Shown here: positions 676-63,490 of the stretch, piece by piece
Position numbering within the stretch: position 1 is the stretch's first letter
How the letters are laid out: every line of letters starts with the position of its first letter
DNA from: Mytilus trossulus
Lineage: Eukaryota
DNA length: 64,000 nucleotides
NCBI RefSeq assembly: GCF_036588685.1
Contig: NC_086382.1
Location: 32,922,001 to 32,986,000, forward strand
Direction: 5' to 3'
Position numbers and translations under genes: made by a program
The notes under the pieces: generated by a model
What the model was told of the DNA's origin: nothing
What the model saw: the letters and a program-made list of their open reading frames with translations, nothing else
Database searches by the model: none

Positions 676-751
676 ATGGACGTTACATATAGGAGCACCA
701 TATTTCTAGTGGTTGTCTGCTATGCAGCAGTAAACTCTAAACCTGGAATTG
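676..751 (+). CDS. Gene 1 exon 1: signal peptide of a CD164/porimin-like sialomucin; model join(676..751,2167..3674), 527 aa
   Basis: ACAATGG start, MDVTYRSTIFLVVVCYAAVNSKPGI hydrophobic leader, then G|GTAGGT phase-1 donor that is in frame with the acceptor at 2167. Confidence 0.8.
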
Positions 752-1730
752 GTAGGTCAGTTTTAAACATATTTAAATTTCAAGTTATTGCTCAACTCGC
801 TATTTTTATTACTTTTTTATTTAAAGGTTATTGTTGTAAATTTACAATATTAATTTTAAACTCTTTGTTTCTTTTATTGTGTATATTATTGATCTTGTTG
901 TTATTTTTTATTTTCATTTCGTTATGTTGTGTCACATACTATAAATATGTAGTTTTATGGCAATGAAATTGAATTGAATTGAATTGTTAAAATGAAATGC
1001 GGTTAAAACGTGTATTTCTAACACGAATACCATGGGCATGAAAATGCTCTTTTTTTTTTTAGACCCCAAACAAATTAATATCGTACCAATTCTCTAAAAA
1101 TGCAGTTGATCAATCGATTTTAAATTAAATTTATTCTGGGTTTTTCTTAAAAGATAATTGCATGTGATTTTCATCAGTAAAATTTAAAATCGCATAATAT
1201 TCAAAAACGAAGTTGCCACATCCGTGTTCATCCTCAACCTTTATATATGTTATGTATTATCATCAAAAACAACTTTCATTTCAATATTAATAATGAACAC
1301 AAATGCTTTCATTTAAGACGGAAACCGTCTAAGATTTAACTAAAATACTACAAAAGTGGAGATTTCAGTAATTTAGCATGACTTAATGATGCAAGTACCC
1401 GATATATGTGCATTGTATTGTCAAAAACAGCCAATATTATTTTATGTAGCAAAAGCATTCTACTTTCTAATAAATAACTAAAAGCTTACATTTTACCATT
1501 TTTTAAAAACTGCTATAATTTGGGGCCAAAAGGGGTTTTTACTGGACCTACTCCTTTCCGCAGTAAAAGGGAAGTCGTTGATTTATCATAATATATATAT
1601 AATAGACAAGCAAAAATAAGTGTGTATAGGTGAGAAAAATAACAAATATGTAGAAATACTAAGTGAAAGTGTTTTGATACTAGTTTAGATACAAATACAT
1701 AAAATCATTTTTTTTTTATATTATATAGAT

Positions 1731-2021
1731 ATAGGAAGATGTGGTGTGAGTGCAAATGAGACAACTCTCCATCACAATAACAATTTAAAAAAGTAAACCA
1801 TTATAGGTCAATGTACGGTCTTCAACACGGAGCCTTGGCTCACACCGAACAACAAGCTATAAAATAAAGGGCCCCAAAAATTACTAGTGTAAAACCATTC
1901 AAATGGGAAAACCAACGGTCTAATCTATATTAAAAAAAACGAGAAACGAGAAACAGGTATAAAATACATAAACAAACGACAACTACTGTACATCAGATTC
2001 CTGACTTAGGACAGGTGCATA
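1731..2021 (+). repeat. Abundant dispersed repeat (AGATGTGGTATGAGTGCCAATGAGACAAC family)
   Basis: The same sequence or fragments recur at ~4810-5070 (-), 9230 (-), 19030-19250 (-), 20433, 21600-21850 (-), 24070-24290 (-), 32063, 33265, 33883, 37245, 41010 (-) and 49520 (-). Confidence 0.8.
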
Positions 2022-2166
2022 GACTAGAAAAAATATAGTAATACACTACCTGGTCTAAAGAAGGGATAAAAGACACAGCGAATATGCTTAAGACTTAAAA
2101 AGATTTTCTGTTAATCAATCAGTTGAGATTTCAATTCTTTTAAGTTATTTTTTTTGTACCTTTCAG

Positions 2167-3674
2167 CAACGAAGCATGTCAATCGCATTGAAGCAGCAAC
2201 TGTCAGACAAACAGCAACCGACGAAAACACGTCAGCTAGTTCTGCAACGACTACAAGAAACTCAAACGTTACTGGTCAGACAACCGAACTCTCTAATGTT
2301 ACCATTCAAACAACGATAACTCCAAATATCACGACCACGAAAAATTCTAACATTACTGTAGAGCCAACAACTCAAAATGCAAATGTTACAATGGAACCTG
2401 TAACTAAGGCCTCAAACGTGACACTAGAACCAACAACGAAAAACCTAAAATGTACAGTAGAACCAACAACCACAAACCAAAATGTGACAGTAGAACCAAC
2501 AACTAATAACCCAAATGGTACAGTAGAACCAACAACGAAAAACCCGAACGTTACAGTAGAACCAACAACCACACACCCAAATGTTACAGTAGAACCAACA
2601 ACTAAAAACCCAAATGTAACAGTAGAACCAACAACCACAAACCCCAATGTTACAGTAGAACCAACAACAAGAAATTCAAATATTACAGTAGAACCAACAA
2701 CTACAAACCCAAATGTTACAGTTGTACCAACAACAAGAAATCCAAATATTACAGGAGAACCAACAACCACAAACCCAAATGTTACAATAGAACCAACAAC
2801 CACAAACCCAAATGTAACAGTAGAACCAACAACAAGAAATCTAAATATAACAGTAGAACCAACAACCACAAAACCAAATGTTACAGTAGAACCAACAACA
2901 AGAAATCCAAATATTACAGTAGAACCAACAACCACAAACCCAAATGTTACAGTACAACCAACAACCACACACCAAAATGTGACTGTAGAACCAACAACCA
3001 CACACCCAAATGTGACTGTAGAACCAACAACCACAACCCCAAATGTTACAGTACAACCAACAACCACACACCCCAATGTTACTGCAGAACCAACAACCAC
3101 AAAACAAAATATAACAGTAGAACCAACAACTAAAAACCCAAATGTTACAGAAGAACCAACAACTAAAAACCCAAATGTTACAGTAGAACCAACAACCACC
3201 AACCCAAATGTTACAGTAGAACCAACAACGAAAAACCCAAATGTAACCGTAGAACCAACAACCACACACCCAAATGTGACTGTAGAACCAACAACCACAC
3301 ACCCAAATGTGACTGTAGAACCAACAACCACAACCCCAAATGTGACTGTAGAACCAAAAACCACACACCCAAATGTTACTGTAGAACCAACAACGAAAAA
3401 CCCAAATGTTACAGTAGAACCAACAACGAAAAACCCAAATGTGACAGTAGAACCTTCAACTCGCCCAAGTAATATGTCTACACCAATGTCAACTCCAAAA
3501 ACGAATCCACATCCAACAACACATGCAATGCCGACCACTACAAAGAAGTATAAATTTAATAGTGTCAGTTTTGTAGAAGGAATAGTTTTAGGAGTCGGAG
3601 TATCAGTTGTTATACTAATTATTGTCTACGTTTTGAAATGCAGAAAACGTGATGCCGGTTACGAAAGACTGTGA
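2167..3674 (+). CDS. Gene 1 exon 2: mucin stalk with 11-aa repeats, TM helix and GYERL tail (CD164/endolyn/TMEM123-like type I membrane mucin)
   Basis: Polypyrimidine tract + CAG acceptor at 2166. Open frame to TGA at 3674. Ends KFNSVSFVEGIVLGVGVSVVILIIVYVLKCRKRDAGYERL, resembling the CD164 FDxxSFxGG-TM-YxxL end. Confidence 0.92.
2343..3464 (+). repeat. Coding 33-bp tandem repeat, 34 copies (consensus NPNVTVEPTTT)
   Basis: 34 x 33 bp = 1122 bp counted from the translation, with no indels. Confidence 0.95.
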
Positions 3675-4369
3675 ACCTAACAATTTATTAGAATAGTCCT
3701 TTTTGTAATCTCATTTGCTTAATACTGATTTTATATTTATATATAAGACCACTATATTTATTCATAATGTCATCGTCTTACTATGTGAATTCCAATGATC
3801 ATTACATATGTATGTAAAAGAAGGAGTTCATTACTAGTATACAAATCCTTTGAGCAGATTGACAAAACTCAAAAGCAAAGGAACAGTGCTTTTATTTTCG
3901 TGCTTTATGTTAAAAGTGAAAGTGAGATTTTCAGCACATGAACAGATACACATTAATACATTTCAGACGGATCATCAACGGGAACAGCAGTGAAATATTA
4001 TATTTTTCAATGATTCATTTTTATATGATTTACAATTTGTTTTTGTTATATAAAATATTTCATAAACAGAGTTTTGTTAGCTTTTTATCAATTAATAGTT
4101 GAATGATGATTTTGTGTGACTTTACTTGTCTTCCATTGGTAAATATTTCATTCATGTTCAGACGAGAGCACTTTAACAAAAATGCAATAGGGTTGTCCTT
4201 CTATAGAGGGTCATCCGACATTATGAGATGTAAATAGTAAATAAATGCCGCTGGAAAATCAGGGTATTTTACATAAGAACAGAAACCCAGTCTTACAACA
4301 TTTATGGACCGCTCAAAGAGTCGCAAGTGTTTTTGACATGCAGAGAGCGAAGCACGAATTCACAACTAA

Positions 4370-8483: not shown

Positions 8484-8550
8484 ATGATGAAAGTGTGTGT
8501 TGTATTAGCCTTTTTTATTGTGTCTGGTTGTGTGGCACCTCCAACAATTG
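8484..8550 (+). CDS. Gene 2 exon 1: signal peptide; model join(8484..8550,9730..10262), 199 aa
   Basis: MMKVCVVLAFFIVSGCVAPPTI then G|GTAAGA phase-1 donor, in frame with exon 2. Confidence 0.88.
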
Positions 8551-9729: not shown

Positions 9730-10262
9730 GAGTAATCACTGCCGATATGAAAACAGAAGCAACGGTAGTATCGTCCCAAACTAACGATATGACAACAGTA
9801 GTAACAACAGAACAACAGATGACAACAAAACCACAACAAATGACAACACACAGTCAAACAACAGTCAATCCCGTTACTTCAATGTCAATGACAACAGAGT
9901 CAATGATGACAAATAATACTTTGCCACCTTCGTCAGAAACCACAGCCAATCAAATGTCGACACAATCCTCAAACATGTCTACTGTCACAATGATGACAGA
10001 AGTACCATCAAACATGTCGTCTGCGGGACAAATGACAACGATGCCGGCTACTATGACAACAGCAGGAAAGGTGACGGCGCACCACCCAACAACCCCATCA
10101 CCGAAACCAACCACACAAAAACCAGAAACAACCAAAAAATCTAAATTTCAAGGAGGAACATTCGTCGGAGGAATGTTTTTAGGAATAGCACTTGCGTGTA
10201 TCGTTTCAGCAATAGTATACTTTCTTAAATGTAGAAATCAAAGCTATGGGAAAGTCAATTAA
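9730..10262 (+). CDS. Gene 2 exon 2: Met/Thr-rich mucin stalk, TM helix and YGKVN tail (CD164/porimin-like)
   Basis: TCTTCTCTTTTAG acceptor. Ends KFQGGTFVGGMFLGIALACIVSAIVYFLKCRNQSYGKVN*. Confidence 0.92.
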
Positions 10263-12961: not shown

Positions 12962-13926
12962 GGCGAGCGAGAGAGCAAAAAGAGCGAAAGAGTGAGTGGG
13001 TGAGTGAGTGAGCGAGCGAGAGAGAGTGACAACTCGCTCGAGTGAGAGCGAGCGAGAGAGAGTGACAGCTCGCTCGAGTGAGAGCGAGCGAGAGTGAAGC
13101 GAGAGAGAGTGAAGCGAGAGAGAGTGAAGCGAGAGAGCGCGAAGCGAGAGAGCGCGAGAGAGAGCGCGAGAGAGAGTGAGAGCGCGAGTGAGAGCGCGAG
13201 AGAGAGTGAGAGTGAGAGTAAGAGTGAGAGTGCGAGAGAGAGCGCGCGAGAGAGCGCGCGAGAGAGAGCGCGAGAGTGAGAGCGCGAGAGTGAGAGAGAG
13301 AGTGAGAGAGACAGTGAGAGTGAGAGAGTGAGAGAGAGAGTGAGAGAGACAGTGAGAGTGAGAGCGAGAGAGATAGAGAGAGAGAGTGAGAGAGATAGTG
13401 TGAGTGGAGAGCGGCGAGAGTGAGAGTGAGTGAGAGCGAGCGAGTAGCGCGCGAGAGCGAGAGAAAGAGAGCGCGAGAGTGACAGTGAGAGCGAGTGTGA
13501 GCGAGAGAAGAGAAGAGTGAGAGCGAGCGAGAGAAGAGTGAGAGAGAAGAGAGAGGGAGTGAGGGCGNNNNNNNNNNNNNNNNNNNNNNNNNNNNNNNNN
13601 NNNNNNNNNNNNNNNNNNNNNNNNNNNNNNNNNNNNNNNNNNNNNNNNNNNNNNNNNNNNNNNNNNNNNNNNNNNNNNNNNNNNNNNNNNNNNNNNNNNN
13701 NAGCGAAAGGGAGCAAGGAAGGGAGTGTGAGAGAGAGCGAAAGACAGTGAGAGGAGTGAAAGAGAGCAAGGGAGGGAGTGAGAGAGCGAGAGCGAAACGC
13801 AGCAAGGCAGCTAGGGAGGGAGTAAGAGCGGAAGACAGTGTGAGAGAGAGCGGGAGCAAGGGGGCAGTGAGTGAGAGCGAAAGAGAATGTGAGAGAGCGA
13901 AAGAGAGTGAGTGTGAGAGAGTGAGA
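12962..13926. repeat. GA-rich compound microsatellite (GA/GAGT/GAGC)n containing an assembly gap
   Basis: Direct reading of the sequence. N run at 13568-13701. Confidence 0.95.
13568..13701. other. Assembly gap (134 N)
   Basis: Run of N. Confidence 1.
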
Positions 13927-17329: not shown

Positions 17330-17369
17330 ATGAATACTTTAAAAGTCATCTTGTCGATCTTTTTTTCAG
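17330..17369 (+). CDS. Gene 3 exon 1: first part of the signal peptide; model join(17330..17369,18388..18923), 191 aa
   Basis: AAACATG start, MNTLKVILSIFFS, then a consensus CAG|GTAAGT phase-1 donor in frame with exon 2. Confidence 0.85.
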
Positions 17370-18387: not shown

Positions 18388-18923
18388 GGATCATTACACT
18401 AACTGCTTCTTCGTCAAATGGTCCAACTTTAGCTGACATTGATGAATCAAATGACACTACCACTCAGTCCGCTCAAGCTACAACACATGGAATACCAGTG
18501 TCATCCCATGCCACATCTTCCGATTCATCAGCAGGTACCACACATGGAAACACAACCAATAAACCTTACATAACTGATACGACGGAAAATCCGGATTACT
18601 CGTCTGCTTCAACAGCCGTTAGTACATCAGGTGCTCCAAAAACATCAAATCCGTCGGCTGTTCCAGAAACGTCAAATCCGACAACTGTCCCAGATAAAAC
18701 AACAATTACTGTACCATCTACATCGGGTAATCCAACAACACGTGTTCCATCGTCGGGCGATGGTTCTGGATTTAGTGGTTTATCCTTTGGAATCGGTATT
18801 CTGGGAGGTGTTATAGCAGTATGTGTGTCAATACTTCTTGTTTTTCTTTATCGACGTCGGTTTCCATATGAAACTTTATCAAATTTTGACTCAACATCTT
18901 CAATAAACTTTTTGAAAGACTGA
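18388..18923 (+). CDS. Gene 3 exon 2: Ser/Thr-rich mucin stalk, TM helix and extended YETL tail (porimin/CD164-like)
   Basis: TTTTTTTCAG acceptor. Ends GFSGLSFGIGILGGVIAVCVSILLVFLYRRRFPYETLSNFDSTSSINFLKD*. Confidence 0.9.
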
Positions 18924-21311: not shown

Positions 21312-22149
21312 CTAAATAAACTTATCTTCCATGATACATTGCAATTTTTTGCCAAAAAACCCCTATTTTTAATAGTAAAATGGGTCTCCTTAATATCAAC
21401 TCTTTTCTTGCATTTCGAATGGAAACAAATAAATGATTAACTTGAACGGCATATAATCTGTCGCAGATTGTATAGAACCATGAATTTGCATATGTTTACG
21501 AGTCGATACCCGTATCTTGGCATTGCACAAGGTCATGGTTTTCTCTGACTGTTAATGACGTATTTTTACTAAATCCATTTCAACCAGCCTAACCTAGCCA
21601 CCATCTGTATGTGCTTATTAGTCAGGAACCTGCAATTTGGTGGTTGTCGTTTGTTGCTGTATATCATATTTGTTTTTCGTTCATTATTCTATACATACAT
21701 CTGATCGTTTGAATTGTTTTACATTTGCCATTTCAGCCTGGGCCTTTCATAGCTGACTATGTGGTATTAATTTTACTCATTGTTAAAGGCCGTACAAGTA
21801 CCTGTAGTTGTTAATTTCTGTGTCATTTGGTCTCTTACAGAGAGTTAATTCATTATCTTCTTCAGTGTTTACTCATGCTCAGGTTGTCGTGTTTATCTAA
21901 ATGTACTCTAGATTGAGTATAGGCTAACGCTTGCATTCTTTTTTTATGCGGTTGACCTTCTTGCATTGTAACACGGAAAATTTAGTATCGCATTCGTGTA
22001 AAATCTATTAATCAAATTGTTTGATTATCATTAAATTGTTATCCTTAAATAAATTAACAAGATTAAAATGCATACTCTTCTACGTAACAAATTATCTATC
22101 AGTAAAATGAAAAATGAATGATTACGTAGATTTTGTTATCATCTTATAT

Positions 22150-22201: not shown

Positions 22202-22295
22202 ATGAACGGCAACGGCCAACTTTTGTGTATTGTCATTTTAGGCGCCTGCATATCAATAATTAATGGAGCTACTGTCCCATCATTAGTGTCATCAG
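22202..22295 (+). CDS. Gene 4 exon 1: signal peptide; model join(22202..22295,23367..23749), 158 aa
   Basis: Kozak-like CCACCATG start, MNGNGQLLCIVILGACISIINGATVPSLVSS, then a CAG|GTAAGC phase-1 donor. Confidence 0.9.
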
Positions 22296-23366: not shown

Positions 23367-23749
23367 CTGTTGTGTCTGCAAGTAGTGGCAATGATACATC
23401 TATCGCACCAGCAGAAACGACAGTAAACCCTGGTACCGTAACAACAGGAACAGGGACAACATTGAATGCCCAGACAACACAACCAACAAATCCCGGAGGT
23501 ACAACACAAGTAACAACACCATTAACACCGGCCAAGGAAACTACACAACCTCCAACCAAACCCGTTGTTTCTACAGGAACAACACCAAATAAACCAACCA
23601 CAACCATAAAACCAGCTGAAGGACGTAAATTTGACGGACCATCTTTTGGTGGTGGTTTCGGTTTAGCGGCTGGCTTAGTTATAATATTTGGAATTGGATA
23701 TTGCTGTTATACAAGACGAAAATCAAGTGGTGGATATAGCCAGTATTAA
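23367..23749 (+). CDS. Gene 4 exon 2: Thr/Pro/Gly mucin stalk, TM helix and GYSQY tail (CD164/porimin-like)
   Basis: TCTTTCAG acceptor. Ends RKFDGPSFGGGFGLAAGLVIIFGIGYCCYTRRKSSGGYSQY*, the closest match here to the FDxxSFxGG family motif. Confidence 0.92.
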
Positions 23750-25948: not shown

Positions 25949-26027
25949 ATGTCGATCCCGTATTTTGTCAGTGTTATATTGATATTCTGTTTCACACTGT
26001 CGACCTTTCCTACCAGTAATGGAGAAC
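25949..26027 (+). CDS. Gene 5 exon 1: signal peptide of a multi-exon Cys-rich CD164/endolyn-like glycoprotein (3' end lies outside the window)
   Basis: MSIPYFVSVILIFCFTLSTFPTSNGE then C|GTAAGT phase-1 donor. Confidence 0.85.
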
Positions 26028-32867: not shown

Positions 32868-32969
32868 CTGTTAGCTGTGAAACGCAAAACCAAACAGCCT
32901 GCTGTAAATATGCAGAATGTGCATACATCAACTGCACAAATGTTACTGAAGTTACAACTTACCATGAAG
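32868..32969 (+). CDS. Gene 5 exon 2 (102 nt): Cys domain 1, first half
   Basis: TTTCAG| (P)VSCETQNQTACCKYAECAYINCTNVTEVTTYHE G|GTAAGT; phase 1-1. Confidence 0.88.
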
Positions 32970-35376: not shown

Positions 35377-35445
35377 GTTGTCATGCCAAAGTCAACTTAA
35401 CTAAACTAGAAGGCGTTTGCAAGAAAGACACTGTTAAAACTATTT
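35377..35445 (+). CDS. Gene 5 exon 3 (69 nt): Cys domain 1, second half
   Basis: TTTTTCAG| (G)CHAKVNLTKLEGVCKKDTVKTI T|GTAAGT; phase 1-1. Confidence 0.88.
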
Positions 35446-36015: not shown

Positions 36016-36033
36016 GTTCAGGTCCAGAAGCAG
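36016..36033 (+). CDS. Gene 5 exon 4 (18-nt micro-exon): (C)SGPEA
   Basis: TTTTTTCTTTCAG| GTTCAGGTCCAGAAGCAG |GTATGT. Completes the split TGT codon for Cys 8. Confidence 0.78.
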
Positions 36034-39177: not shown

Positions 39178-39285
39178 TAGATAAATGCGGCTTAGTAAAA
39201 ACTGAAACAGACTGTTGTAACACCACTGCCAATGCTGGTTGTGCTTGGTTAGGAGCTTGTGCCAACAGCACAATGAAACTTAACG
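39178..39285 (+). CDS. Gene 5 exon 5 (108 nt; NAGNAG alternative start at 39181): Cys domain 2, first half
   Basis: TTTTACAG| (V)DKCGLVKTETDCCNTTANAGCAWLGACANSTMKLN G|GTAAGT; phase 1-1. Confidence 0.88.
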
Positions 39286-40201: not shown

Positions 40202-40258
40202 CTTGCTACAATGCCACTGATTTACCAAAACGTTGTAATAATGAATCCACAGATTCAT
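40202..40258 (+). CDS. Gene 5 exon 6 (57 nt): Cys domain 2, second half
   Basis: TGTTTTAG| (A)CYNATDLPKRCNNESTDS T|GTAAGT; phase 1-1. Confidence 0.88.
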
Positions 40259-41046
40259 GTAAGTTTGATTTTAACCTCATTTTTTAAGGTCAAAGTTAAC
40301 AGACATGACAGACCTCAAATGAAAGCACTTCTTAGAGTTGACTTTATTAGTCAGAAAGATTTACTATATTAGCTAAAATGGAGGTATTGAGGTAACTTTA
40401 AGAGGAAATCACAAGAATTGTTTTGATGGTAGTTCATTATGTTTTATTCTTGTATGATTTTAAAAATGAGCAAAAGAACTTGCAAGAAAGCCTTTAAACA
40501 CAAAGAAGCTTTGGAATACTTCATGGAAGACCCCTCTGTTTTAAAAAAATTAGTTGAGCATTGCCCTAAAAGTTAGAAGTTGTAGGTGCATTTTTAAAAC
40601 AAATTCCACAACGAGCAAAGATATACATAGTTTTCGATACTGAGAATTTCTTCTGAATTTCATCTTTTAACTTGTGGTGCTCTTTATTGCAAAACTCTAG
40701 GACTGAAAATACGCATAAACTATGAGTATTTCAGTATGACAATTTTGATAATAAAATTTGTGTGTGAATTAGCAGCTGATGAAGTGTCGAAAACAAGAGA
40801 AAAAAAAGATTTACAGCATCAGTATTGAGAATTTTCTATTCTAAAAGTATCATACATTTCTTAACTGTTTGGAATAATGATGACAATCATAAACATGATA
40901 AAGGCTGTATGTATCCTTTACTCTATATATGATTTGTAAAATGATTTGTAAAATGATTTGTAAAATGTATAGTGATAGTCTATGGTGACCTATAGTTGAT
41001 AATTTTGTGTGGAGAGTTGTCTCATTGGCAATCATACCAAATCTTC

Positions 41047-42890: not shown

Positions 42891-42899
42891 GTCTAACTA
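42891..42899 (+). CDS. Gene 5 exon 7 (9-nt micro-exon): (C)LT
   Basis: ACTTTTATTTTATTTTTCAG| GTCTAACTA |GTAAGT. Needed to complete Cys 8 of domain 2 and to avoid a stop codon. Confidence 0.75.
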
Positions 42900-44011: not shown

Positions 44012-47000
44012 TTTTTATACGACCGCAAAATTTGAAAAAAATTTCGTCGTATATTGCTATCACGTTGGCGTCGTCGTCGTCACATATGAGTGAATAGAAA
44101 TCTATGAAATTTTAACACAAGGTTTATGACCACAAAAGAAAGGTTGGTATTGATTTTGGGAGTTTAGGTTCCAACAGTTTAGGAATAAGGGGCCAAAAAA
44201 GGGACCCAAATGAGCATTTTTCTTGGTTTTCGCACCATAACGTTAGTATAAGTAAATAGAAATCTATGAAATTTAAACACAATGTTTATGACCATAAAAG
44301 GAAGGTTGGTATAGATTTTGGGAGTTTTGGTCCCAACAGAATAAGGGGCCCAAAGGGGCCAAAATTAAACTTTGTTTGATTTCATCAAAAATTGAATAAA
44401 TGGGGTTCTTTGATATGCCAAATCTAACTGTGTATGTAGATTCTTCATTTTTGTTCCTGTTTTCAAATTGGTCTACATTAAAGTCCATAGGGTCCAAAAT
44501 TAAACTTAGTTTGATTTTAACAAAAATTGAAATCTTGGGGTTCTTTGATATGCTGAATCCAAACATGTACTTAGATTTTTGATTATGGGCCCAGTTTTCA
44601 AGTTGGTCCAAATCAGGATCTAAAATTAGTATATTAAGTATTGTGCAATAGCAAGTCTTTTCAATTGCACAGTATTGCGCAATGGCAAGAAATATCTAAT
44701 TGCACAATATTCTGAAATAGCAATTTTTATACGACCGCAAATTTTGAAAAAAAATTTGTCGTATATTGCTATCACGTTGGCGTCGTCGTCGTCGTCGTCG
44801 TCCGAATACTTTTAGTTTTCGCACTCTAACTTTAGTAAAAGTGAATATAAATCTATAAAATTTTATCACAAGGTTTATGACCACAAAAGGAAGGTTGGTA
44901 TTGATTTTGGGAGTTTTGGTCCCAACATTTTAGGAATTAGGGGCCAAAAAGGGCCCAAATAAGCATTTTCTTGGTTTTCGCACTATAACTTTAGTTTAAG
45001 TTAATAGAAATCTATGAAATTTTGACACAAGGTTTATGACCACAAAAGAAAGGTTGGGATTGATTTTGGGAGTTTTGGTTTCGATAGTGTAGGAATTAGG
45101 GGCCAAAAAAGGGCCCAAATAAGCATTATTCTTGGTTTTCGCACAAGAACTTTAGTTTAAGTGAATAGAAAATAATGAAATTTATACACAATGTTTATGA
45201 CCACAAAAGGAAGGTTGGTATTGATTTAAGGAGTTAAGGTCCCAACAGTTTAGGAATAAGGGGCCAAAAGGGACCCAAATAAGCATTTTTCTTGGTTTTC
45301 GCACCATAACTTTAGTATAAGTAAATAGAAATCTATGAAATTTAAACACAAGGTTTATGACCATAAAAGGAAGGTTGGTATTGATTTTGGGAGTTTTGGT
45401 CCAAACAGTTTAGGAATAAGGGGCCCAAAGGGTCCAAAATTAAACTTTGTTTGATTTCATCAAAATTGAATAATTGGGGTTCTTTGATATGCTGAATCTA
45501 ACTGTGTATGTAGATTTTTAACTTTCGGTCCCGTTTTCAAATTGGTCTACATTAAGGTCCAAAGGGTCCAAAATTAAACTTCGTTTGATTTTGACAAAAA
45601 ATTAATCGGTTGGGTTCTTTGATATGCTGAATCTAAAAATGTACTTAGATTCTTGATTATGGGCCCAGTTTTCAAGTTGGTCCAAATCGGGGTCCAAAAT
45701 TAAACTTTGTTTGATTTCATCAAAAATTGAATAAATGGGGTTCTTTGATATGCCAAATCTAACTGTGTATGTAGATTCCTCATTTTTATACGACCGCAAA
45801 TTTTGAAAAATTTTTCGTCGTTTATTGCTATCACGTTGGCGTCGTCGTCGTCCGAATACTTTTAGTTTTCGCACTCTAACTTTAGTAAAAGTGAATAGAA
45901 ATCTATGAAATTTTAACACAAGGTTTATGACCATAAAAGAAAGGCTGGTATTGATTTTGGGAGTTTTGGTCCCAACATTTTAGGAATTAGGGACCAAAAA
46001 GGGCCCAAATAAGCATTTTCTTGGTTTTCGCACTATAACTTTAGTTTAAGTTAATAGAAATCTATGAAATTTTGACACAAGGTTTATAACCACAAAATAA
46101 AGGTTGGGATTGATTTTGGGAGTTTTATTTTCAACAGTTTAGGAATTGGGGGCCAAAAAAGGGCCCAAATAAGCATTATTCTTGGTTTTCGCACAATAAC
46201 TTTAGTTAAAGTAAATAGAAATCAATGAAATTTAAACACAATGTTTATGACCACAAAAGGAAGGTTGGTATTGATTTTGGGAGTTTCGGTCCCAACAGTT
46301 TAGGAATTAGGGGCCAAAAAGGGACCCAAATAAGCATTTTTCTTGGTTTTCGCACCATAGTGTTAGTATAAGTAAATAGAAATCTATGAAATTTAAACAC
46401 AAGGTTTATGACTATAAAAGGAAAATTGGTATTGATTTTGGAAGTTTTGGTCCCAACAGTTAAGGAAAAAGGGGCCCAAAGGGTCCAAAATTAAACTTTG
46501 TTTGATTTCATCAAAATTGAATAATTGGGGTTCTTTAATATGCCGAATCTAACTGTGTATGTAGATTCTTAATTTTTGGTCCCGTTTTCAAATTGGTCTA
46601 CATTAAGGTCCAAAGGGTCCAAAATTAAACTTAGTTTGATTTTAACAAAAATTGAAACCTTGGGGTTCTTTGATATGCTGAATCCAAAAATGTACTTAGA
46701 TTTTTGATTATTGGCCCAGTTTTCAAGTTGGCCCAAATCGGGGTCCAAAATTAAACATTGTTTGATTTCATCAAAAATTGAATAATTGGGGTTCTTTGAT
46801 ATGCCAAATCTAACTGTGTATGTAGATTCTTAATTTTTGGTCCAGTTTTAAAATTGGTCTAAATTAAAGTGCAAAGGGTCCAAAATTAAACTAAGTTTGA
46901 TTTTAACAAAAATTAAATTCTTGGGCCTCTTTGATATGCTGAATCTAAACATGTACTTAGATTTTTGATTATGGGCCCAGTTTTCAAGTTGGTCCAAATC

Positions 47001-48607
47001 AGGATCTAAAATTATTATATTAAGTATTGTGCAATAGCAAGTCTTTTCAATTGCACAGTATTGTGCAATGGCAAGAAATATCTAATTTCACAATATTGTG
47101 AAATAGCAAATTTTTTTTTAATTAAGAGTTATCTTTCTTTGTCCAGTATAGTAAGCAAGAAATATCTGCAAGAATTTTTTTTAATTGGAGTTATCTTTCT
47201 TTGTCCAGAATCAACTTAAATCTTTGTTATATACAATATACAATGTATATTCACTTTTTACTACCAACTGATAAATTTAAATAATCTTTACCATTCAGTG
47301 ATAACAAGCAGTTTTTTACATCATGTATTAAAATGAGTAGTAATTGTTGCAAACTCCATTAGAATATTTTAATTGAAATTAGTTTTGGAATAAGGGAAAG
47401 GGGGATGTGAATAAAAAATTGGGTTAAATTTTTCTCATTTGAAATTTCATAAATAAAAAGAAAATTTCTTCAAACATTTTTTTGAGAGGATTAATATTCA
47501 ACAGCATAGTGAATTGCTCTAAGAGAAAACAAAAATTTTAAGTTCATTTAAATACATTCATTCTGTGTCAGAAACCTATGCTGTGTCAACTATTTAATCA
47601 CAATCCAAATTTAGAGCGGAATCCAGCTTGAATGTTGTGTCCATACTTGCCCCAACCGTTCAGGGTTCAACCTCTGCGGTCGTATAAAGCTACACCCTGC
47701 GGAGCATCTGGTTGGTCTTGTTTTCAAATTGGTCTACATTAAAGTCCAAAGGGTCCAAAATTAAACTTAGTTTGATTTTAACAAAAATTGAAATCTTGGG
47801 GTTCTTTGATATGCTGAATCCAAACATGTACTTAGATTTTTGATTCTGGGCCCAGTTTTCAAGTTGGTCCAAATCAGGATCTAAAATTATTATATTAAGT
47901 TTTGTGCAATAGCAAGTCTCTTCAATTGCACAGTATTGCGCAATGGCAAGAAATATCTTATTGCAAAATATTGTGAAATAGCAATTTTGTTTTTAATTAG
48001 AGTTATCTTTCTTTGTCCAGAATAGTAAGCAAGAAATATCTAATTGTAAGAATTTTTTTTATTTGGAGTTATCTTTCTTTGTCCAGAATCAACTTAAATC
48101 TTTGTTATATATACAATATACAATGTATATTCACTTTTTACTACCAACTGATAAATTAAAATAATCTTTACCATTCAGTGATAACAAGCAGTTTTTTTAC
48201 ATCTTAATATTTTATGATGTATTTAAATGAGTAGTAATTGTTGCAAACTCCATTAGAAATTTTAATTGAGATTAGTTTTGGAATAAGGGAAAGGGGGATG
48301 TGATTAAAAAAATTGGGTTCAATTTTTCTCATTTGAAATTTCATAAATAAAAAGAAAATTTCTTCAAACATTTTTTTGAGAGGATTAATATTCAACAGCA
48401 TAGTGAATTGCTCTAAGAGAAAACAAAAATTTTAAGTTCATTAGAACACATTCATTCTGTTTCAGAAACCTATGCTGTGTCAACTATTTAATCACAATCC
48501 AAATTTAGAGCTGAATCCAGCTTGAATGTTGTGTCCATACTTGCCCCAACCGTTCAGGGTTCAACCTCTGCGGTCGTATAAAGCTACACCCTGCGGAGCA
48601 TCTGGTT
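44012..48607 (+). mobile_element. Nested stack of HINE-like family 2 elements (heads at 44012, 44724, 45783; tails at 47713, 48607)
   Basis: Head TTTTTATACGACCGCA + (GTC)n. Tail TGCGGTCGTATAAAGCTACACCCTGCGGAGCATCTGGTT. Internal ~120-bp tandem units. Confidence 0.85.
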
Positions 48608-48748
48608 TCTTTTGCCTCTGATCTTTATACAATCTATATGATTAATACTTGTTTAGAAAAAATGTGCATGGGCCTAGTGATTAAATAATTGTTACCTGGC
48701 ATGATTGAAAAATATATTGTAATGTTTATCTTATTTATTTTGTATTAG

Positions 48749-51664: not shown

Positions 51665-51706
51665 ATATGTACTACTGCTGATGAAAGTTAATTGTTTTCT
51701 TATCAG

Positions 51707-51823
51707 GAACCTGTAAATCTTTCATTAAGAAGGAGGAATGCTGTAACACCACCTTCACCCAGTTAACAGATTGTTTGTTCTATGAGTGTAAAAATAAGAC
51801 AGATCCTACAAAGAGTATCAGTG
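51707..51823 (+). CDS. Gene 5 exon 9 (117 nt): Cys domain 3, first half
   Basis: TTTTCTTATCAG| (G)TCKSFIKKEECCNTTFTQLTDCLFYECKNKTDPTKSIS G|GTATGT; phase 1-1. Confidence 0.88.
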
Positions 51824-53279: not shown

Positions 53280-53351
53280 GTTGTTTCAATAAATCAGACC
53301 AAGCTGTGATAAATAAAACCTGTGATTTGACAGAAAAAGTTAACCAAACTT
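53280..53351 (+). CDS. Gene 5 exon 10 (72 nt): Cys domain 3, second half
   Basis: ATTCAG| (G)CFNKSDQAVINKTCDLTEKVNQT T|GTAAGT; phase 1-1. Confidence 0.88.
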
Positions 53352-53404
53352 GTAAGTATTAATTTGGACATACCTCCTGTTAGAGCAATTATATCTGTTT
53401 ATAA

Positions 53405-54333: not shown

Positions 54334-57300
54334 TTTTTAGCTCACCTGGCCTAAAAGGCCATGTGAGCTTTTCTCATCACTTGGCGTCCGTCGTCGTCTG
54401 TCGTCGTTAACAATTTTTCAAACATCTTCTTCTCTGAAGCTACTGAATGGATTTGGATGAAACTTAGCATGATTGTTCCTTAGAGTATCCTGCACAAAGT
54501 GTGTGCTTTGATTTTTGATCTGTCAAAAAACATGGCCGCCGTTACTAAAAATAGAACATAGGGGTCAAATGCAGTTTTTGGCTTATATCTCAAAAACTAA
54601 AGCATTTAGAGCAAATCTGACATGGGGTAAAAATGTTCATTAGCTGAAGATCTATCAGCCCTGAAATTTTCAGATGAATCAAACAAACCATTGTTGGGTT
54701 GCTGCCACTTAATTGGTAATTTTAAGGAAATTTTGCAGTTTTTATACGACCGCTCCTCGTATATTGCTATCACGTTGGCGTCGTCGTCGTCGTCGTCGTC
54801 GTCCGAATACTTTCAGTTTTCGCACTCTAACTTTAGTAAAAGTGAATAGAAATCTATGAAATTTTAGCACAAGGTTTATGACCATAAAAGGAAGGCTGGT
54901 ATTGATTTTGGGAGTTTTGGTCCCAACATTTTAGGAATTAGGGGCCAAAAAGGGCCCAAATAAGCATTTTCTTGGTTTTCGCACTATAACTTTAGTTTTA
55001 GTTAATAGAAATCTATGAAATTTTGACACAAGGTTTATGACCACAAAAGAAAGGTTGGGATTGATTTTGGGAGTTTTGGTTTCAACAGTTTAGGAATTAG
55101 GGGCCAACAAAGGGCCCAAATAAGCATTATTCTTGGTTTTCACACAATAACTTTAGTTAAAGTAAATAGAAATCAATGAAATTTAAACACAATGTTTATG
55201 ACCACAAAAGGAAGGTTGGTATTGATTTTGGGAGTTTCGGTCCTAACAGTTTAGGAATTAGGGGCCAAAAAGGGACCCAAATAAGCATTGTTCTTGGTTT
55301 TCGCACCATAGCGTTAGTATAAGTAAATAGATATCTATGAAATTTAAACACAAGGTTTATGACTATAAAAGAAAGGTTGATATTGATTTTGGGAGTTTTG
55401 GTCCCAACAGTTAAGGAAAAAGGGGCCCAAAGGGTCAAAAATTAAACTTTGTTTGATTTCATCAAAATTGAATAATTGGGGTTCTTTAATATGCCGAATC
55501 TAACTGTGTATGTAGATTCTTAATTTTTGGTCCCGTTTTCAAATTGGTCTACATTAAGGTCCAAAGGGTCCAAAATTAAACTTAGTTTGATTTTAACAAA
55601 AATTGAAACCTTGGGGTTCTTTGATATGCTGAAACTAAAAACGTACTTAGATTTTTGATTATTGGCCCAGTTTTCAAGTTGGCCCAAATCGAGATCCAAA
55701 ATTAAACATTGTTTGATTTCATTAAAAATTGAATAATTGAGGTTCTTTGATATGCCAAATCTAACTGTGTATGTAGATTCTTAATTTTTGGTCCAGTTTT
55801 AAAATTGGTCTAAATTAAAGTGCAAAGGGTCCAAAATTAAACTAAGTTTGATTTTAACAAAAATTAAATTCTTGGGCCTCTTTGATATGCTGAATCTAAA
55901 CATGTACTTAAATTTTTGATTATGGGTCCAGTTTTCAAGTTTGTCCAAATCAGGATCTAAAATTATTATATTAAGTATTGTGCAATAGCAAGTCTTTTCA
56001 ATTGCACAGTATTGTGCAATGGCAAGAAATATCTAATTTCACAATATTGTGAAATAGCAAATTTTTTTTAAATTAAGAGTTATCTTTCTTTGTCCAGTAT
56101 AGTAAGCAAGAAATATCTGCAAGATTTTTTTTTAATTGGAGTTATCTTTCTTTGTCCAGAATCAACTTAAATCTTTGTTATATACAATATACAATGTATA
56201 TTCACTTTTTACTACCAACTGATAAATTTAAATAATCTTTACCATTCAGTGATAACAAGCAGTTTTTTTACATCTTAATATTTTATGATGTATTTAAATG
56301 AGTAGTAATTGTTGCAAACTCCATTAGAATATTTTAATTGAAATTAGTTTTGGAATAAGGGAAAGGGGGATGTGATTAAAGAATTGGGTTCAATTTTTCT
56401 CATTTGAAATTTCATAAATAAAAAGAAAATTTCTTCAAACATTTTTTTGAGAGGATTAATATTCAACAGCATAGTGAATTGCTCTAAGAGAAAACAAAAA
56501 TTTTAAGTTCATTTGAATACATTCATTCTGTGTCAGAAACCTATGCTGTGTCAACTATTTAATCACAATCCAAATTTAGAGCGGAATCCAGCTTGAATGT
56601 TGTGTCCATACTTGCCCCAACCGTTCAGGGTTCAACCTCTGCGGTCGTATAAAGCTACGCCCTGCGGAGCATCTGGTTGGTCATTATCTTGAATATTATT
56701 ATAGATAAAGATAAACTGTAAACAGCAAAAATGATCAGCAAAGTAAGATCTACAAATAAGTTAATATGACAAAAATTGTCAATTGACCCCTTAAGGGGTT
56801 ATTGTCCTTTAATGACAATTTTTCACAATTTATTCATCATATTTGCTGACTTTAAAAAATCTTCTCCTCTGAAACTACTGAATGGATTTGGATGAAACTT
56901 AGCATGATTGTTCCTTAGATTATCCTGCACAAAGTGTGTGCTTCGATTTTTGATCCATCAAAAAACATGGCCGCCGTTACTAAAAATAGAACATAGGGGT
57001 CAAATGCAGTTTTTGGCTTATATCTCAAAAACTAAAGCATTTAGAGCAAATCTGACATGGGGTAAAAATGTTCATTAGCTGAAGATCTATCAGCCCTGAA
57101 ATTTTCAGATGAATCAAACAAACCATTGTTGGGTTGCTGCCACTTAATTGGTAATTTTAAGGAAATTATGCAGTTTTTGGTCATTATCTTGAATATTATT
57201 ATAGATACAGATAAACTGTTAACATCAAAAATTATTAGCAAAGTAAGATCTACAAATAAGTTAATATGACCAAAATTGTCAACTGACCCCTTAAGGGGTT

Positions 57301-58643: not shown

Positions 58644-58829
58644 ACTCTTTTAGTAACAATTGGTGCATGTTTATCTAGAACTGCATTAGATATGTCACAC
58701 CACATCTGAATACATGTATTTGGCTGACTTTCATGATAAAACTCCAGTAGCAGTTATTTAAAGCAGTTGAAATGCTGTGTTAATCAAGTAATTTAAATTT
58801 ATTTTTATGAAATTTATATCAGGAGATGT

Positions 58830-61800
58830 CAGGGCCGTAACTAGCCTCGTCTAATAGTGAGGCAAATATATATACGCCGAGCAGATCGAGGCAAAAAAAA
58901 TTGGCGAGGGGTCTGGGGACCGCTTAAGGCCCCCACAAGCTCTGAGAAAAATAACGCAAAATCGTGCATTCTGAGAGTTTCCAGAACTCTTTCTGACATT
59001 GAAACGCAATTAATTTTTAGCTAATTTTCTGACAATATTCTGGTCTCAACGCAAAACCATAGATTCATTTCAATTTAAGACATTTTGGTTTTATGGACAA
59101 CATTTAAAGACAGATATAAAATTGAGAATGGAAAGAGACAGCAACCCGACCATAGAATAGACAACAGCATAAGTTCACCAACAAGTCTTCAATGACCTCT
59201 TCAATACAGCGAGAGATTTCCGCACCCCGAGGCGTCTTTCAGCTGGCCCCTAACAAATATGTATACTAGTTCAGTGGTAACAAACACCATACTTAACTCC
59301 AAATTGTTCACAAGAAATTAAAATTAAAAATGATACAAGACTAACAAAGGCTAGAGGCTCCTGACTTGGGACAGGCACAAACATGCGGCGGGGTTAAACA
59401 TGTTTATGAGTTATCAACCCTCCCTCTATACCTCTAGTCAATGTAGAAAAGTAGGATAAAGCAAAAATCGTAATTCTCATAATCATTTATTCCGGATCTC
59501 TCCGTCTGTTCTGGTCTTATATTGTGCTTAGACTTTGGTGATTTTTTTATGACTAGATTTAAATATAGTGACAGTGCAGTATCATACTTTAAGTACTAGT
59601 ATACTGCTTAAGTCAACACTAGGGACCATCTTGACCCTGTTTTACGGTATTAATGATTCTTTTATTGTTGAAGACCCTCCAGCAACTTTGACCATTGATC
59701 ATTAGTATCTTATCTATGCATCAACTTTGTGTGCGATTAGGTTTCGTGCACATTTACTCAATATTCCTTTATTTTCTGTTAAAGGGTCTGAAAATGGAAG
59801 TTAATGCAAGTTTAACCCTTCAATGTAAAAAGTCATATGATTGGTTTTTTTTCAAATTATTTGATACCTGGAAATTGGTGACCTTACTTATTTAGCTATT
59901 TAGTTTTATCTACCAAAAAAAAAAGCCAGTTTTTATACGGCTGCAAAATTTGAAAAATTTTTCGTCGTATATTGCTATCATACTGGCGTCGTCGTCGTCG
60001 TCCAAATACTTTTAGTTTTCGCACTCTAACTTTAGTAAAAGTGAATAGAAATCTATGAAATTTTAACACAAGGTTTATGACCACAAAAGGAAGGTTGTTA
60101 TTGATTTTGGGAGTTTTGGTCCCAACAGTATAGGAATTAGGGGCCAAAAAGGGCCCAAATAAGCATTTTCTTGGTTTTCGCACTATAACTTTAGTATAAG
60201 TAAATAGAAATCTATGAAATTTAAACACAAGGTTTATGATCATAAAAGGAAGGTTGGTATTGATTTTGGGAGTTTTGGTCCCAACAGTTTAGGAATAAGG
60301 GGCTCAAAGGGTCCAAAATTAAACTTTGTTTGATTTCATCAAAATTGAATAATTGGGGTTCTTTGATATGCTGAATCTAACTGTGTATGTAAATTCTGAA
60401 CTTTTGGTCCCGTTTTCAAATTGGTCTACATTAAGGTCCAAAGGGTCCAAAAAAATGAATTGGTTGGGTTCTTTGATATGCTGAATCTAAAAATGTACTT
60501 AGATTCTTGATTATTGGCCCCGTTTTCAAGTTGGTCCAAATCGGGGTCCAAAATTAAACTTTGTTTAATTTCATCAAAAATTGAATAAATGGGGTTCTTT
60601 GATATGCCAAATCTAACTGTGTATGTAGATTCTTCATTTTTGGTCCTGTTTTCAAATTGGTCTACATTAAAGTCCAAAGGGTCCAAAATAAAACTTAGTT
60701 TGATTTTAACAAAAATTGAAATCTTGGGGTTCTTTGATATGCTGAATCCAAACATGTACTTAGATTTTTGATTATGGGCCCAGTTTTTAAGGTGGTCCAA
60801 ATCAGGATCTAAAATTATTATATTAAGTATTGTTCAATAGCAAGTCTTTTCAATTGCACAGTATTGCGCAATGGCAAGAAATTTCTAATTGCACAATATT
60901 GTGAAATAGCAATTTTTTTTTTAAATAGAGTTATCTTTCTTTGTCCAGAATCAACAAGAAATATCTAATTTCACAATATTGTGCAATAGCAAGAATTTTT
61001 TTTAATTGGAGTTATCTTTCTTTGTCCAGAATCAACTTAAATCTTTGTTATATACAATATACAATGTATATTGTATATAACAAAGATGTTTCTTTTTTCT
61101 AAATGTAGCCTTTATTAAAATTGTTACATTTTTTGTAGGCTAAAAGATTTGCAGAAGGGGTTTTCACACATGATTACCCAAAACCAGAATGTCTTTCATG
61201 TTATGAACCAAATATACAATGTATATTCACTTTTTACTACCAACTGATAAATTAAAATAATCTTTACCATTCAGTGATAACAAGCAGTTTTTTTACATCT
61301 TAATATATTATGATGTATTTAAATGAGTAGTTATTGTTGCAAACTCCATTAGAAATTTTAATTGAGATTAGTTTTGGAATAAGGGAAAGGGGGATGTGAT
61401 TAAAAAAAATTGGGTTCAATTTTTCTCATTTGAAAATTCATAAATAAAAAGAAAATTTCTTCAAACATTTTTTTGAGAGGATTAATATTCAACAGCATAG
61501 TGAATTGCTCTAAGAGAAAACAAAAATTTAAAGTTCATTAGAACACATTCATTCTGTGTCAGAAACCTATGCTGTGTCAACTATTTAATCACAATCCAAA
61601 TTTAGAGCTGAATCCAGCTTGAATGTTGTGTCCATACTTGCCCCAACCATTCAGGGTTCAACCTCTGCGGTCGTATAAAGCTACGCCCTGCGGAGCATCT
61701 GGTTTATTCTTTGATATCAAGTTTAATTCTCCATGCAGAAAAGACCATTTTTTTCTGTGTCTTGTTATTCTTGTAGCATCGTATATTCTTAAAAGATCTG

Positions 61801-62175
61801 AAAATATTTTCTCGCACAATATCTGGACATCGGTGGACATGCAACATTGCAAAACCACACGTTTACAAAGAAAAATCAACACTCAGACTATAGTCATAAA
61901 GTAGGACAATAAATGAACAAATGACAAACCCGGGACACAGACTGAGTACAAACAGTAGACCATCAACTCAGAAAACTTACAGTAAAAAAGAAACATGGAT
62001 AACAAAAAACATGCTGGGGCGACACCAGAGAGTGAAGAGAACTTGCTTCTTGCTAGACACTTTCCGTGAAAACAATTCGATATTAAGACAATCTTTTGTT
62101 TCAGTTTTTTCTCTTTTTTTTAAATTTCTAACATGAGGCATTTGCCTCATTTGCCTCAATGTAGTTACGGCCCTG
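58830..62175. mobile_element. Non-autonomous TIR element with 5-bp TSD, carrying nested insertions
   Basis: Perfect 14-bp TIRs CAGGGCCGTAACTA and TAGTTACGGCCCTG, with GATGT on both sides. Confidence 0.8.
59930..61704 (+). mobile_element. HINE-like family 2 element
   Basis: Same head and tail as 54739-56678. Confidence 0.85.
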
Positions 62176-62784
62176 GATGTCTTGGAAAAGTTTGATTTGG
62201 GGGGGGGGGGGATTTTTCAAAGAAGCTGTGTCACCTAGAAAAATAAATTGTATGGAAACTTGTATTAAAATCATCTAAATGTACACAAAGGTTGATGTAA
62301 GCAATTATAGACAACCATACCACCTTCAACAATAAAAAAATACTATATTGTATAGTTGACTTTGAAAGATGCGAAATAATTCAAATGAGAAAAGTTACAG
62401 CCTATTTTATAAAAAAACAATTTACAAAACATATATAATAAGTCTAGGAGTATTATGAAATTAATTTCAAAGGTTTACTGAAGATTTATTGATATTCTTT
62501 GAATATTTATTGGAATTTGTGGGTACATGGGAACCACATATTCAAATGGTGAACGAATTACAAATTTTACAAGGGAATGTAGGCAGACTTTAACAAAACT
62601 ACCAAATTAAATACCTATAAACATGCCAGTTTACAATAAATAAAAGAATCAGCAAAATTTGAGAGGACTTAGAAAATGTTCCAATCAATTATTTTTTACT
62701 TGTTTGATTAGTGATATTCATTGCGGATATAGATTATCTGGTAAATTGTATTGTAAGCACTCTAAAGCCCACTGCTATGAAACT

Positions 62785-63075
62785 TTTTTATGCCACAATT
62801 ATGGGCATTATGTTTTTTGGTCTGTGCATCCATTTGTCCGTCCGTTTGTTTAGCTGTCATTCCTTCGTCCATCTGTCCTGCTTCAGGTTAAGTTTTTGGT
62901 CAAGGTAGTTTTTGATGAAGTTGAAGTCAAATCAACTTGAAACTTAGTACACATGTTCCTTATGATGTGATATTTCTAATTTTAATGCCAAATTAGAGTT
63001 TTTACTCTACTTTCATGAAACATAGAAAATGATAATGCAGATGGGGCATTCATGTACTAGGGACATATTCTTGTT
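62785..63075 (+). mobile_element. Short HINE/DINE-like element
   Basis: TTTTTATGCCAC..(GTCC-like)n..TGGGGCAT..GGACATATTCTTGTT. Confidence 0.6.
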
Positions 63076-63463
63076 TACAGGTGTTATGCCTCTTGGAAAT
63101 TAAAAATTTTATGGAAAATATTGCTATCTCTAAAGCAATCTTTTGCCATTGCTTTTTAAAATATATTTAACCCTTACCATTTTGGAACAGTAATATAACT
63201 GCCTTACCCAAAATGATAGTATTTGCGGCAATAATAATAATTGCCTCCAATGGTTCTCCATACTTCAAGAGATTAATAAGATACAATTTTAAGGTTTAAG
63301 GCACATTTTGAGCTCGCGTACGATCTTGGAAAATTGAAATCAGATAAGAATTTAGTATGACAATGTGTTTATTCCTTTTTTGATGGAAGGAGACTCCCTA
63401 TTATATATATGGTACAAATTTAATGATAACAAATATTTAAAGAGATTTTATATTTATTGCTAG

Positions 63464-63490
63464 GTGATGCAACACCAGTTGGTCCTACAG
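63464..63490 (+). CDS. Gene 5 exon 11 (27-nt micro-exon): (C)DATPVGPT; the gene continues beyond the window
   Basis: TATTTATTGCTAG| GTGATGCAACACCAGTTGGTCCTACAG |GTAAGT. Completes Cys 8 of domain 3. Confidence 0.8.

Follow-up and report, generated by a model that had tools for sequence, protein, structure and literature searches.

CD164, also known as endolyn, MGC-24 or sialomucin core protein 24, is a membrane mucin with a signal peptide, a mucin stalk, the juxtamembrane motif F-D-x-x-S-F-x-G-G, a single transmembrane (TM) helix and a short tail. In vertebrates it has one Cys-rich domain, and its tail signal YHTL is read by AP-2/AP-3, which drives endocytosis and delivery to endosomes and lysosomes (PMC4510537). 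Human CD164 without YHTL is trapped at the cell surface (PMC4510537). The same family, Pfam PF05283 (MGC-24), also includes the Cys-poor members TMEM123 (porimin) and CD164L2, small type I mucins that have the same anchor, but no Cys-rich domain. Vertebrate genes of the TMEM123/CD164L2 type are dispersed on different chromosomes, whereas the members in the mussel Mytilus trossulus all sit in one locus. Here we describe this locus, based on a 64,000-nucleotide stretch of contig NC_086382.1 (assembly GCF_036588685.1, positions 32,922,001 to 32,986,000, forward strand) and its flanks. The stretch is called the window throughout, and features are given in its coordinates, with negative values 5' of it. 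Five small two-exon genes are called g0 to g4, and two alternative terminal exons of a Cys-rich, CD164-like gene t1 and t2. Most probably, this is the single CD164/MGC-24-family locus of M. trossulus, made up of tandem small membrane mucins and the CD164 orthologue.

The genes of the array share with CD164 all the features listed above, from signal peptide to short tail. The sixth gene is the annotated orthologue, with CD164-type eight-Cys modules and one terminal exon ending in NYHTL. It differs from known CD164 genes in having a probable five Cys modules, encoded by phase 1-1 exon pairs, compared with three in other molluscs, and in its two alternative anchor exons. The small genes differ from CD164 more strongly: they have no Cys-rich domain, one mucin region only, and two exons. 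They are not CD164 orthologues, because their stalks hold 0-1 Cys and no Cys-rich domain lies between mucin regions. In this respect g0-g4 resemble TMEM123 and CD164L2, and g4 groups with bivalve proteins of that type. The tails of g0 and g1 (KCRKSDAGYDRM and KCRKRDAGYERL), about 12 residues long and ending in A-G-Y-x-x-hydrophobic, presumably resemble the tail of LAMP-1 with its G-Y-x-x-hydrophobic lysosomal signal. No LAMP lumenal domain is found in g0 or g1; the resemblance to LAMP-1/LAMP-2 is one of likely function, not of family membership. Searches of one literature library for CD164, sialomucin or porimin in Mytilus, oyster and bivalves retrieved nothing relevant, neither on this locus nor on CD164 of Mytilus or oysters. 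A preliminary description of the window knew of no such cluster in bivalves.

Seven anchor exons in one array

The array was recognized by four juxtamembrane motifs on the + strand of the window: KFNSVSFVEG (3552-3581, g1), KFQGGTFVGG (10143-10172, g2), GFSGLSFGIG (18768-18797, g3) and KFDGPSFGGG (23627-23656, g4). Each lies near the 3' end of a long open reading frame (ORF), which encodes a Ser/Thr/Pro-rich stretch before the motif and, after it, a hydrophobic helix and a short, basic, Tyr-containing tail; the frame stops 29-41 codons past the last residue of the motif. When the 1.3-Gb M. trossulus genome was searched with an anchor profile, there were seven matches at E <=1e-18, and the next match had an E of 0.016. 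All seven anchor exons are on one strand within 91 kb (C10:32918129-33008070), which is far from a chance gathering of motifs. The gene order on the + strand is a PPIL6-like gene, g0 (just 5' of the window), g1-g4, and the CD164-like Cys-rich gene.

The preliminary description had read four co-oriented two-exon genes followed by a multi-exon Cys-rich gene, and motifs, frames and phase-1 introns bear this out. Its count of five genes in tandem was too low, as g0 brings the array to at least six, and the fifth gene does not end at 63490; this is merely its last exon inside the window, and the gene runs on beyond it. The cluster is a genuine, clearly delimited expansion within a known family, larger than first noticed, and not a new kind of system.

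The additional gene g0 is a two-exon paralogue of g1, with its ATG at -5236 and its stop after -3719 (gene -5236 to -3716). The two loci are colinear, with 72-83% DNA identity across promoter, intron, exon and 3' flank (about 80% overall; 84% between the two first exons). The duplication unit is about 6 kb and the tandem period 5.9 kb. The N-x-T comb of g0 is much shorter, with 12 sequons compared with 38 in g1.

Membership in the CD164/MGC-24 family

Membership was assessed with the Pfam profile (gathering cut-off 28.5 bits), and with an independent profile made from 138 family anchors, from which every relative of the Mytilus small genes was excluded. As controls, anchors were used in which each of the four segments (pre-motif, motif, helix and tail) had been shuffled on its own, and these reached maxima of 9.5-13.9 bits on the independent profile. 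Scores on Pfam and on the independent profile, respectively, were 41.6 and 50.8 bits for g0, 29.3 and 36.9 for g1, 34.2 and 36.7 for g2, 16.6 and 14.8 for g3, and 16.0-16.2 and 49.4 for g4. The terminal exons scored 36.0 and 82.2 bits (t1), and 46.3 and 87.7 bits (t2). In all seven anchors, F-x-x-x-S/T-F-x-x-G stands directly before a single C-terminal TM helix, in alignment register. A profile of the seven anchors matched 533 of 1.84 billion representative proteins at E <=0.001, and for nearly all of the 150 matches listed the match position was the protein C-terminus. Two weak Pfam hits on contig C4 were rejected as members, with only 6-11 bits on the family anchor profile.

The assignment of all four genes of the window to the CD164/MGC-24 family, as previously proposed, is therefore upheld by Pfam for g1 and g2, and by the independent profile for g4. 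Together with g0, these three are members of the family. The remaining gene, g3, is a probable divergent member, which is borderline by sequence and rests mainly on its position and architecture.

Gene models of the small genes

Exons were predicted from an ATG with a hydrophobic signal-like segment, a consensus donor leaving one codon base, and an acceptor after a pyrimidine tract. The signal peptides of g0-g4 were judged by inspection of the hydrophobic N-terminal exons. Databases were searched with single exons, one by one, whole proteins entering only as database entries. In g1-g4 all introns are in phase 1, and exon 2 holds the mucin stalk, the F-x-x-x-S/T-F-x-x-G motif, the TM helix and the Tyr tail. 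Each small gene keeps an unbroken frame (176-501 codons), and the splice signals and signal exons are preserved.

All exons of g1-g4 are on the + strand. In g1, exon 1 (676-751) provides the start codon and signal peptide (MDVTYRSTIFLVVVCYAAVNSKPGI) and ends at the phase-1 donor G|GTAGGT; exon 2 (2167-3674) encodes the N-x-T comb stalk and the anchor (3552-3671), with the stop at 3672-3674. The stalk includes a 33-nt tandem repeat array of about 32 copies (2413-3454). Exon 1 of g2 (8484-8550; donor G|GTAAGA) encodes the signal peptide MMKVCVVLAFFIVSGCVAPPTI, and exon 2 (9730-10262) the Met/Thr stalk and the anchor KFQGGTFVGG-TM-KCRNQSYGKVN, up to the stop. In g3, exon 1 (17330-17369; donor G|GTAAGT) encodes the first 13 signal-peptide codons (MNTLKVILSIFFS) and matches the N-terminus of M. 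galloprovincialis VDI29418.1, and exon 2 (18388-18923) encodes the Ser/Thr stalk and the anchor GFSGLSFGIG-TM-RRRFPYETL with a 17-residue extension before the stop. Exon 1 of g4 (22202-22295; donor G|GTAAGC) encodes a signal peptide from the RefSeq start; an in-frame ATG at 22148 serves as start in M. galloprovincialis models. Exon 2 (23367-23749), supported by its RefSeq match and the independent profile, encodes the Thr/Pro/Gly stalk and the anchor KFDGPSFGGG-TM-RRKSSGGYSQY, followed by the stop.

Composition counts agree with the stalk types named in the preliminary description. The N-x-T comb of g1 has 14% N, 31% T and 38 N-x-S/T sequons, the g2 stalk 12% M and 27% T, the g3 stalk 19% S and 22% T, and the g4 stalk 30% T, 14% P and 9% G. 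Overall, the small-gene stalks are 34-41% Ser+Thr.

Support for the predicted introns is limited to g3 and g4 and comes from annotated M. trossulus and M. galloprovincialis proteins, which are annotation models, not reads. The two predicted exons of g4 reproduce M. trossulus XP_063401922.1 (P0152), and orthologues in M. galloprovincialis are XP_076076692.1 and VDI29419.1. For g3, the M. galloprovincialis orthologues are VDI29418.1 and VDI29417.1. The entries VDI29417-19 are consecutive and lie on one 241-kb contig. P0154, from a 939-nt Logan contig, was rejected as a spliced g3 transcript, as its N-terminus is translated intron 5' of the acceptor. P0053 likewise gives no splicing evidence, with translated intron as its N-terminus. 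Both look like ORFs called on unspliced genomic contigs.

The RefSeq name of the g4 protein, 'levansucrase-like', is surely a misnomer. Other bivalve relatives bear names such as 'hepatitis A virus cellular receptor 1-like' and 'integumentary mucin A.1-like'. All these names derive from low-complexity mucin similarity and conceal the family. Two relatives from one European Nucleotide Archive (ENA) assembly, the g4-like P0025 and the g2-like P0157, are each recorded with a longest contig of 60,737 bases. They may share one contig, and if so, a more distant mussel (43-54% identity) has retained the g2-g4 linkage.

The CD164-like gene

The Cys-rich gene corresponds to RefSeq XP_063404365.1, a 269-aa 'sialomucin core protein 24-like' protein, which aligns exactly to the genome. 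Its exact spliced match on the + strand covers 51688-51823, 53280-53351 and 63464-63490 inside the window, the last being a 27-nt linker exon and the final exon of the gene within the window. It continues past the window at 64361-64474, 66156-66203, 68576-68647, 77740-77841, 78905-78970, 79768-79788 and 85928-86070. The gene thus extends 22 kb beyond the window, with eight exons after 63490, two alternative terminal exons included. The RefSeq models of this gene in M. trossulus and M. edulis have no signal peptide; XP_063404365.1 starts with a six-base exon at 40378-40383, which is merely the aligner's first solution. A sequence search of the Protein Data Bank with the CD164-like protein gave no match.

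Upstream of this model, further exons can be predicted on the + strand. A signal-peptide exon that is not in the RefSeq model lies at 25949-26027 (phase-1 donor C|GTAAGT); P0162, a full-length relative, has an N-terminus with 58% identity to it. Cys module A would consist of a first half at 32868-32969 (102 nt) and a second half at 35377-35445 (69 nt; GCHAK...C...), which resembles GCHAKTDVAGITAVC of relative P0003; both are phase 1-1. A tentative 18-nt micro-exon (36016-36033) would complete the eighth Cys of this module (C-SGPEA), comparable to CDGPEV of P0003. Module B would follow with halves at 39178-39285 (108 nt) and 40202-40258 (57 nt), again phase 1-1, the latter with a lone T at its end; the M. 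edulis RefSeq model P0159 begins within this exon, in another frame. A candidate 9-nt micro-exon at 42891-42899 is tentative, based on splice signals only. For module C, use of a phase-1 acceptor at 51707, instead of the RefSeq acceptor at 51688, gives a 117-nt first half (51707-51823), and the second half (53280-53351, 72 nt) matches XP_063404365.1 exactly.

Second-half exons finish on a lone T, and the eighth Cys needs a next exon starting with GT or GC. Without micro-exons, the junctions give stops, TAA from A2 to B (35445/39178) and TGA from B2 to C (40258/51707). The signal exon at 25949 and the two upstream Cys modules are in frame if acceptor 51707 is used. Because the upstream exons all keep phase 1-1 and the frame, the probable extent of the gene is 25949 to 86070, and on these predictions it probably has five eight-Cys modules, each from two exons. 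Molluscan relatives seen as transcripts have three Cys modules. The last module aligns to positions 23-60 of Pfam MGC-24.

Both terminal exons lie past the window end on the + strand, t1 at 83065-83216, ending in NYHTL, and t2 at 85928-86073, ending in NYHQM. They begin with nearly identical bases (CTGC[TA]GCACCATC), and both run from the linker through motif, helix and tail to a stop. In isoform X3 of M. galloprovincialis (P0160), t1 follows the same upstream exons, and t2 is used by M. trossulus, M. edulis and M. coruscus models. As annotated models join the same upstream exons to either, t1 and t2 are alternative terminal exons, each with its own helix and sorting signal. Among Mytilus species they are 98-100% conserved. 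This modular CD164 gene with alternative anchors is the most interesting side feature of the locus.

Relationships, origin and constraint

In the anchor tree, g0-g3 group with mussel-like sequences and the M. galloprovincialis g3 orthologue (SH-aLRT 98), with g3 on a long branch. The fourth gene of the window, g4, joins Mytilus relatives, then Cys-less proteins of Mya arenaria, Mercenaria mercenaria and Potamilus streckersoni; the Potamilus protein, KAK3576962.1, is named 'Porimin' by UniRef. The exons t1 and t2 fall among the canonical multi-Cys CD164 proteins of molluscs. The anchors therefore do not cluster as one clade, but fall into three separate sets (g0-g3, g4, and t1/t2). Because of this split, the proposed lineage-specific expansion can apply to g0-g3 at most, and these genes are candidates for it. 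It does not apply to g4, which appears to come from an older Cys-less lineage common to other bivalves. Trichoplax also has a small Cys-less family member; given its presence there and in other bivalves, the small Cys-less form is old.

The array would have originated by tandem duplication next to CD164, with g0/g1 as a colinear ~6-kb duplication. Going 5' from the motif, the small genes cease to resemble t1/t2 after about 10-12 residues, near the start of the t1/t2 exon. This limit is compatible with the duplication of the first and last exons of an ancestral CD164-like gene that the preliminary description suggested, but does not prove it.

The anchor is more conserved than the stalk. Between M. 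trossulus and M. galloprovincialis, g4 has 39/39 (100%) identical anchor residues and 74/87 (85%) identical stalk residues, and g3 has 47/50 (94%) and 113/128 (88%), respectively. The dN/dS ratio of g0 versus g1 is ~0.4 over the last 40-75 codons (anchor) and ~1.2 over the first 60 codons of exon 2 (distal stalk). This pattern fits working genes in which the anchor is constrained and the stalk is free or diversifying. With seven anchors in 91 kb and higher identity in anchors than in stalks, the local expansion with a conserved anchor and divergent stalks was correctly recognized in the preliminary description.

Two cyclophilin exons lie upstream on the + strand, starting at -17728 and -14920. 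For both, the best match among solved structures is PPIL6, at 64 bits for one (next 61; margin 3) and 65 bits for the other (next 50; margin 15). A protein atlas search with the PPIL6-like exon gave generic cyclophilin only. We take human PPIL6 and CD164 to be immediate neighbours. The two genes are within one 540-kb interval of 6q21 (PMC11370542). Judging from these matches, the PPIL6-CD164 linkage may be conserved between mussel and human. With this linkage, the array appears to occupy the ancestral CD164 locus, and its small genes stand between PPIL6 and CD164.

Tail signals and a possible mechanism

A Tyr is kept in the tails of all four genes first described, and that of g4 (YSQY) is not in the canonical Y-x-x-hydrophobic form. 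The other tail signals are YDRM (g0), YERL (g1), YGKV followed by N (g2), YETL followed by 17 residues (g3), YHTL (t1) and YHQM (t2). The Tyr-x-x-hydrophobic signals are 6-11 residues past the helix. In g0, g1, t1 and t2 they are at the very C-terminus, and that of g2 is one residue short of it.

The following mechanism can be proposed. The product of a small gene would be a type I membrane mucin with a cleavable signal peptide from exon 1. Its stalk would be disordered and heavily glycosylatable, with a gene-specific composition. The juxtamembrane motif K-F-[DNQ]-G-x-S-F-x-G-G runs into a Gly-rich TM helix, and the cytosolic tail of 11-23 residues holds a basic stop-transfer patch and, at its C-terminal end or close to it, the Tyr-x-x-hydrophobic signal. 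AP-2/AP-3 adaptors would recognize the tails as they do NYHTL of endolyn, and the proteins would accordingly travel in cycles from the cell surface to endosomes and lysosomes, with varied glycan displays on one shared trafficking anchor. The choice between t1 and t2 would give the CD164-like gene two sorting-signal variants. The sequence analysis shows the genes with their architecture, the family membership of g0, g1, g2 and g4, the clustering, and an anchor more conserved than the stalk. We infer glycosylation, adaptor binding, lysosomal or surface location and the expression of g0-g2; the lysosomal or endocytic sorting is deduced from the tails, by comparison with endolyn.

A bolder possibility is a mytilid-specific combinatorial system of 'one anchor, many glycan displays'. 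Here, g0-g3 would be a fast-evolving clade that has grown between PPIL6 and CD164, and the CD164 gene would mix up to five in-frame Cys-module cassettes, as well as swap anchor and signal (NYHTL/NYHQM). We regard this as speculative and unlikely. If true, the cell would set both the glycan surface that is shown and its destination, surface or lysosome. Such a system could act in the defence of haemocytes or gut epithelium, and individuals could differ in its presence or absence.

Alternative explanations

Several results weigh against a single locus of working family members with sorted products. Both g3 and g4 stay under the Pfam cut-off, and the tails of g4 (YSQY) and g2 (YGKVN) are not textbook C-terminal Y-x-x-hydrophobic signals. 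The anchor tree has only 41 columns and can serve as a guide only, and the g0/g1 dN/dS values rest on 15-23 substitutions. Moreover, exon 2 of g2 and of g0 match no protein among 5.8 billion, in searches that cover only proteins of 0.55-1.75x query length and are weak on low-complexity sequence. Because of these missing matches, g0 and g2 seem unannotated and could be silent. Indeed, g0, g1 and g2, or some of them, could be unexpressed or decaying duplicates, with only g3, g4 and the CD164-like gene working, and the fact that the relatives P0053 and P0154 appear to be unspliced genomic ORFs would fit. The intact frames, splice signals and signal exons are not expected of decaying genes, nor is the low dN/dS of the g0/g1 anchor while the introns diverged by ~20%, and the limits of the protein searches weaken the argument from missing matches. 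We therefore consider decay improbable. Still less probable in our view is that g3 is an unrelated small membrane mucin within the array, whose anchor resembles the others by convergence, through a Gly-rich TM helix and a common YxxL. Its Pfam score of 16.6 bits is below the 18-20 bits that genome-wide noise reaches, its branch in the tree is long, and a protein atlas search with it yields generic membrane mucins only, with no CD164 hit. Against a profile built from just the six other local anchors, it reached 21.6 bits and an E of 0.31 genome-wide. Yet in that same search it ranked second among the non-members in 1.3 Gb, and was the only one of them also matching the motif. A top-two hit at noise level that falls inside the 91-kb array (~7e-5 of the genome), sits between g2 and g4 on their strand and has the same two-exon phase-1 structure makes a chance resemblance very unlikely. 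Motif, helix and Tyr are also in register; in hhalign against the family anchors (probability 95%), FSGLSF aligns to FDGASF and PYETL to NYHTL, and the M. galloprovincialis orthologue has a Pfam MGC-24 E of 4.8e-4.

The small genes could also encode glycocalyx or adhesion mucins of the plasma membrane, with tails that are not lysosomal and an anchor kept for membrane insertion, dimerisation or lipid rafts. The deviating tails of g4 (GGYSQY) and g2 (SYGKVN) and the 17 residues beyond YETL in g3 speak for this, as do the atlas look-alikes of g3, which are cell-surface mucins (Mucin-15, Mucin-21, SMAGP and glycophorin). Against it, g0, g1, g3, t1 and t2 have canonical Y-x-x-L/M signals, C-terminal except in g3, as in endolyn (PMC4510537), and the g4 tail is identical in M. 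trossulus and M. galloprovincialis, the g3 tail nearly so. A purely surface-bound set of mucins is thus somewhat unlikely, though it is the alternative to which we give the most weight. We prefer the reading of a single CD164-family locus, in which the small genes are family members and their tails probable sorting signals.

Other features of the window

An assembly gap (N run) at 13568-13701 lies inside a degenerate (GA)n microsatellite (13076 to ~13925). It is intergenic, past the stop of g2 (10262) and ahead of the start of g3 (17330), and since it overlaps none of the predicted exons, the reading frames are independent of the gap. At gathering thresholds, Rfam gave no RNA family within the 64-kb window. 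The long introns of the CD164-like gene contain repeated families of ORF fragments at 44273-48700, 55196-57241 and 59896-61800, on both strands, for example NYYIKYCAIASLFNCTVL..., IQLECCVHTCPNRSGFNLCGRIKL... and MVINLV.KFHRF.FT.TKV.VRK... These are probably dispersed repeats or transposon remnants.

Significance

Our findings leave unchanged the understanding of how CD164-type proteins work. What mussels gain is a defined single-locus CD164 family, which is partly unannotated, and in which RefSeq models are partly misnamed or without signal peptide. The shared PPIL6-CD164 linkage suggests that the Cys-less small members arose at the ancestral locus by tandem duplication. With its alternative anchor exons, the CD164-like gene is a case in which the choice of a sorting signal via splicing can be put to the test. 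In combining a conserved anchor with a free-running stalk, the array is a compact natural experiment on the diversification of mucin stalks.

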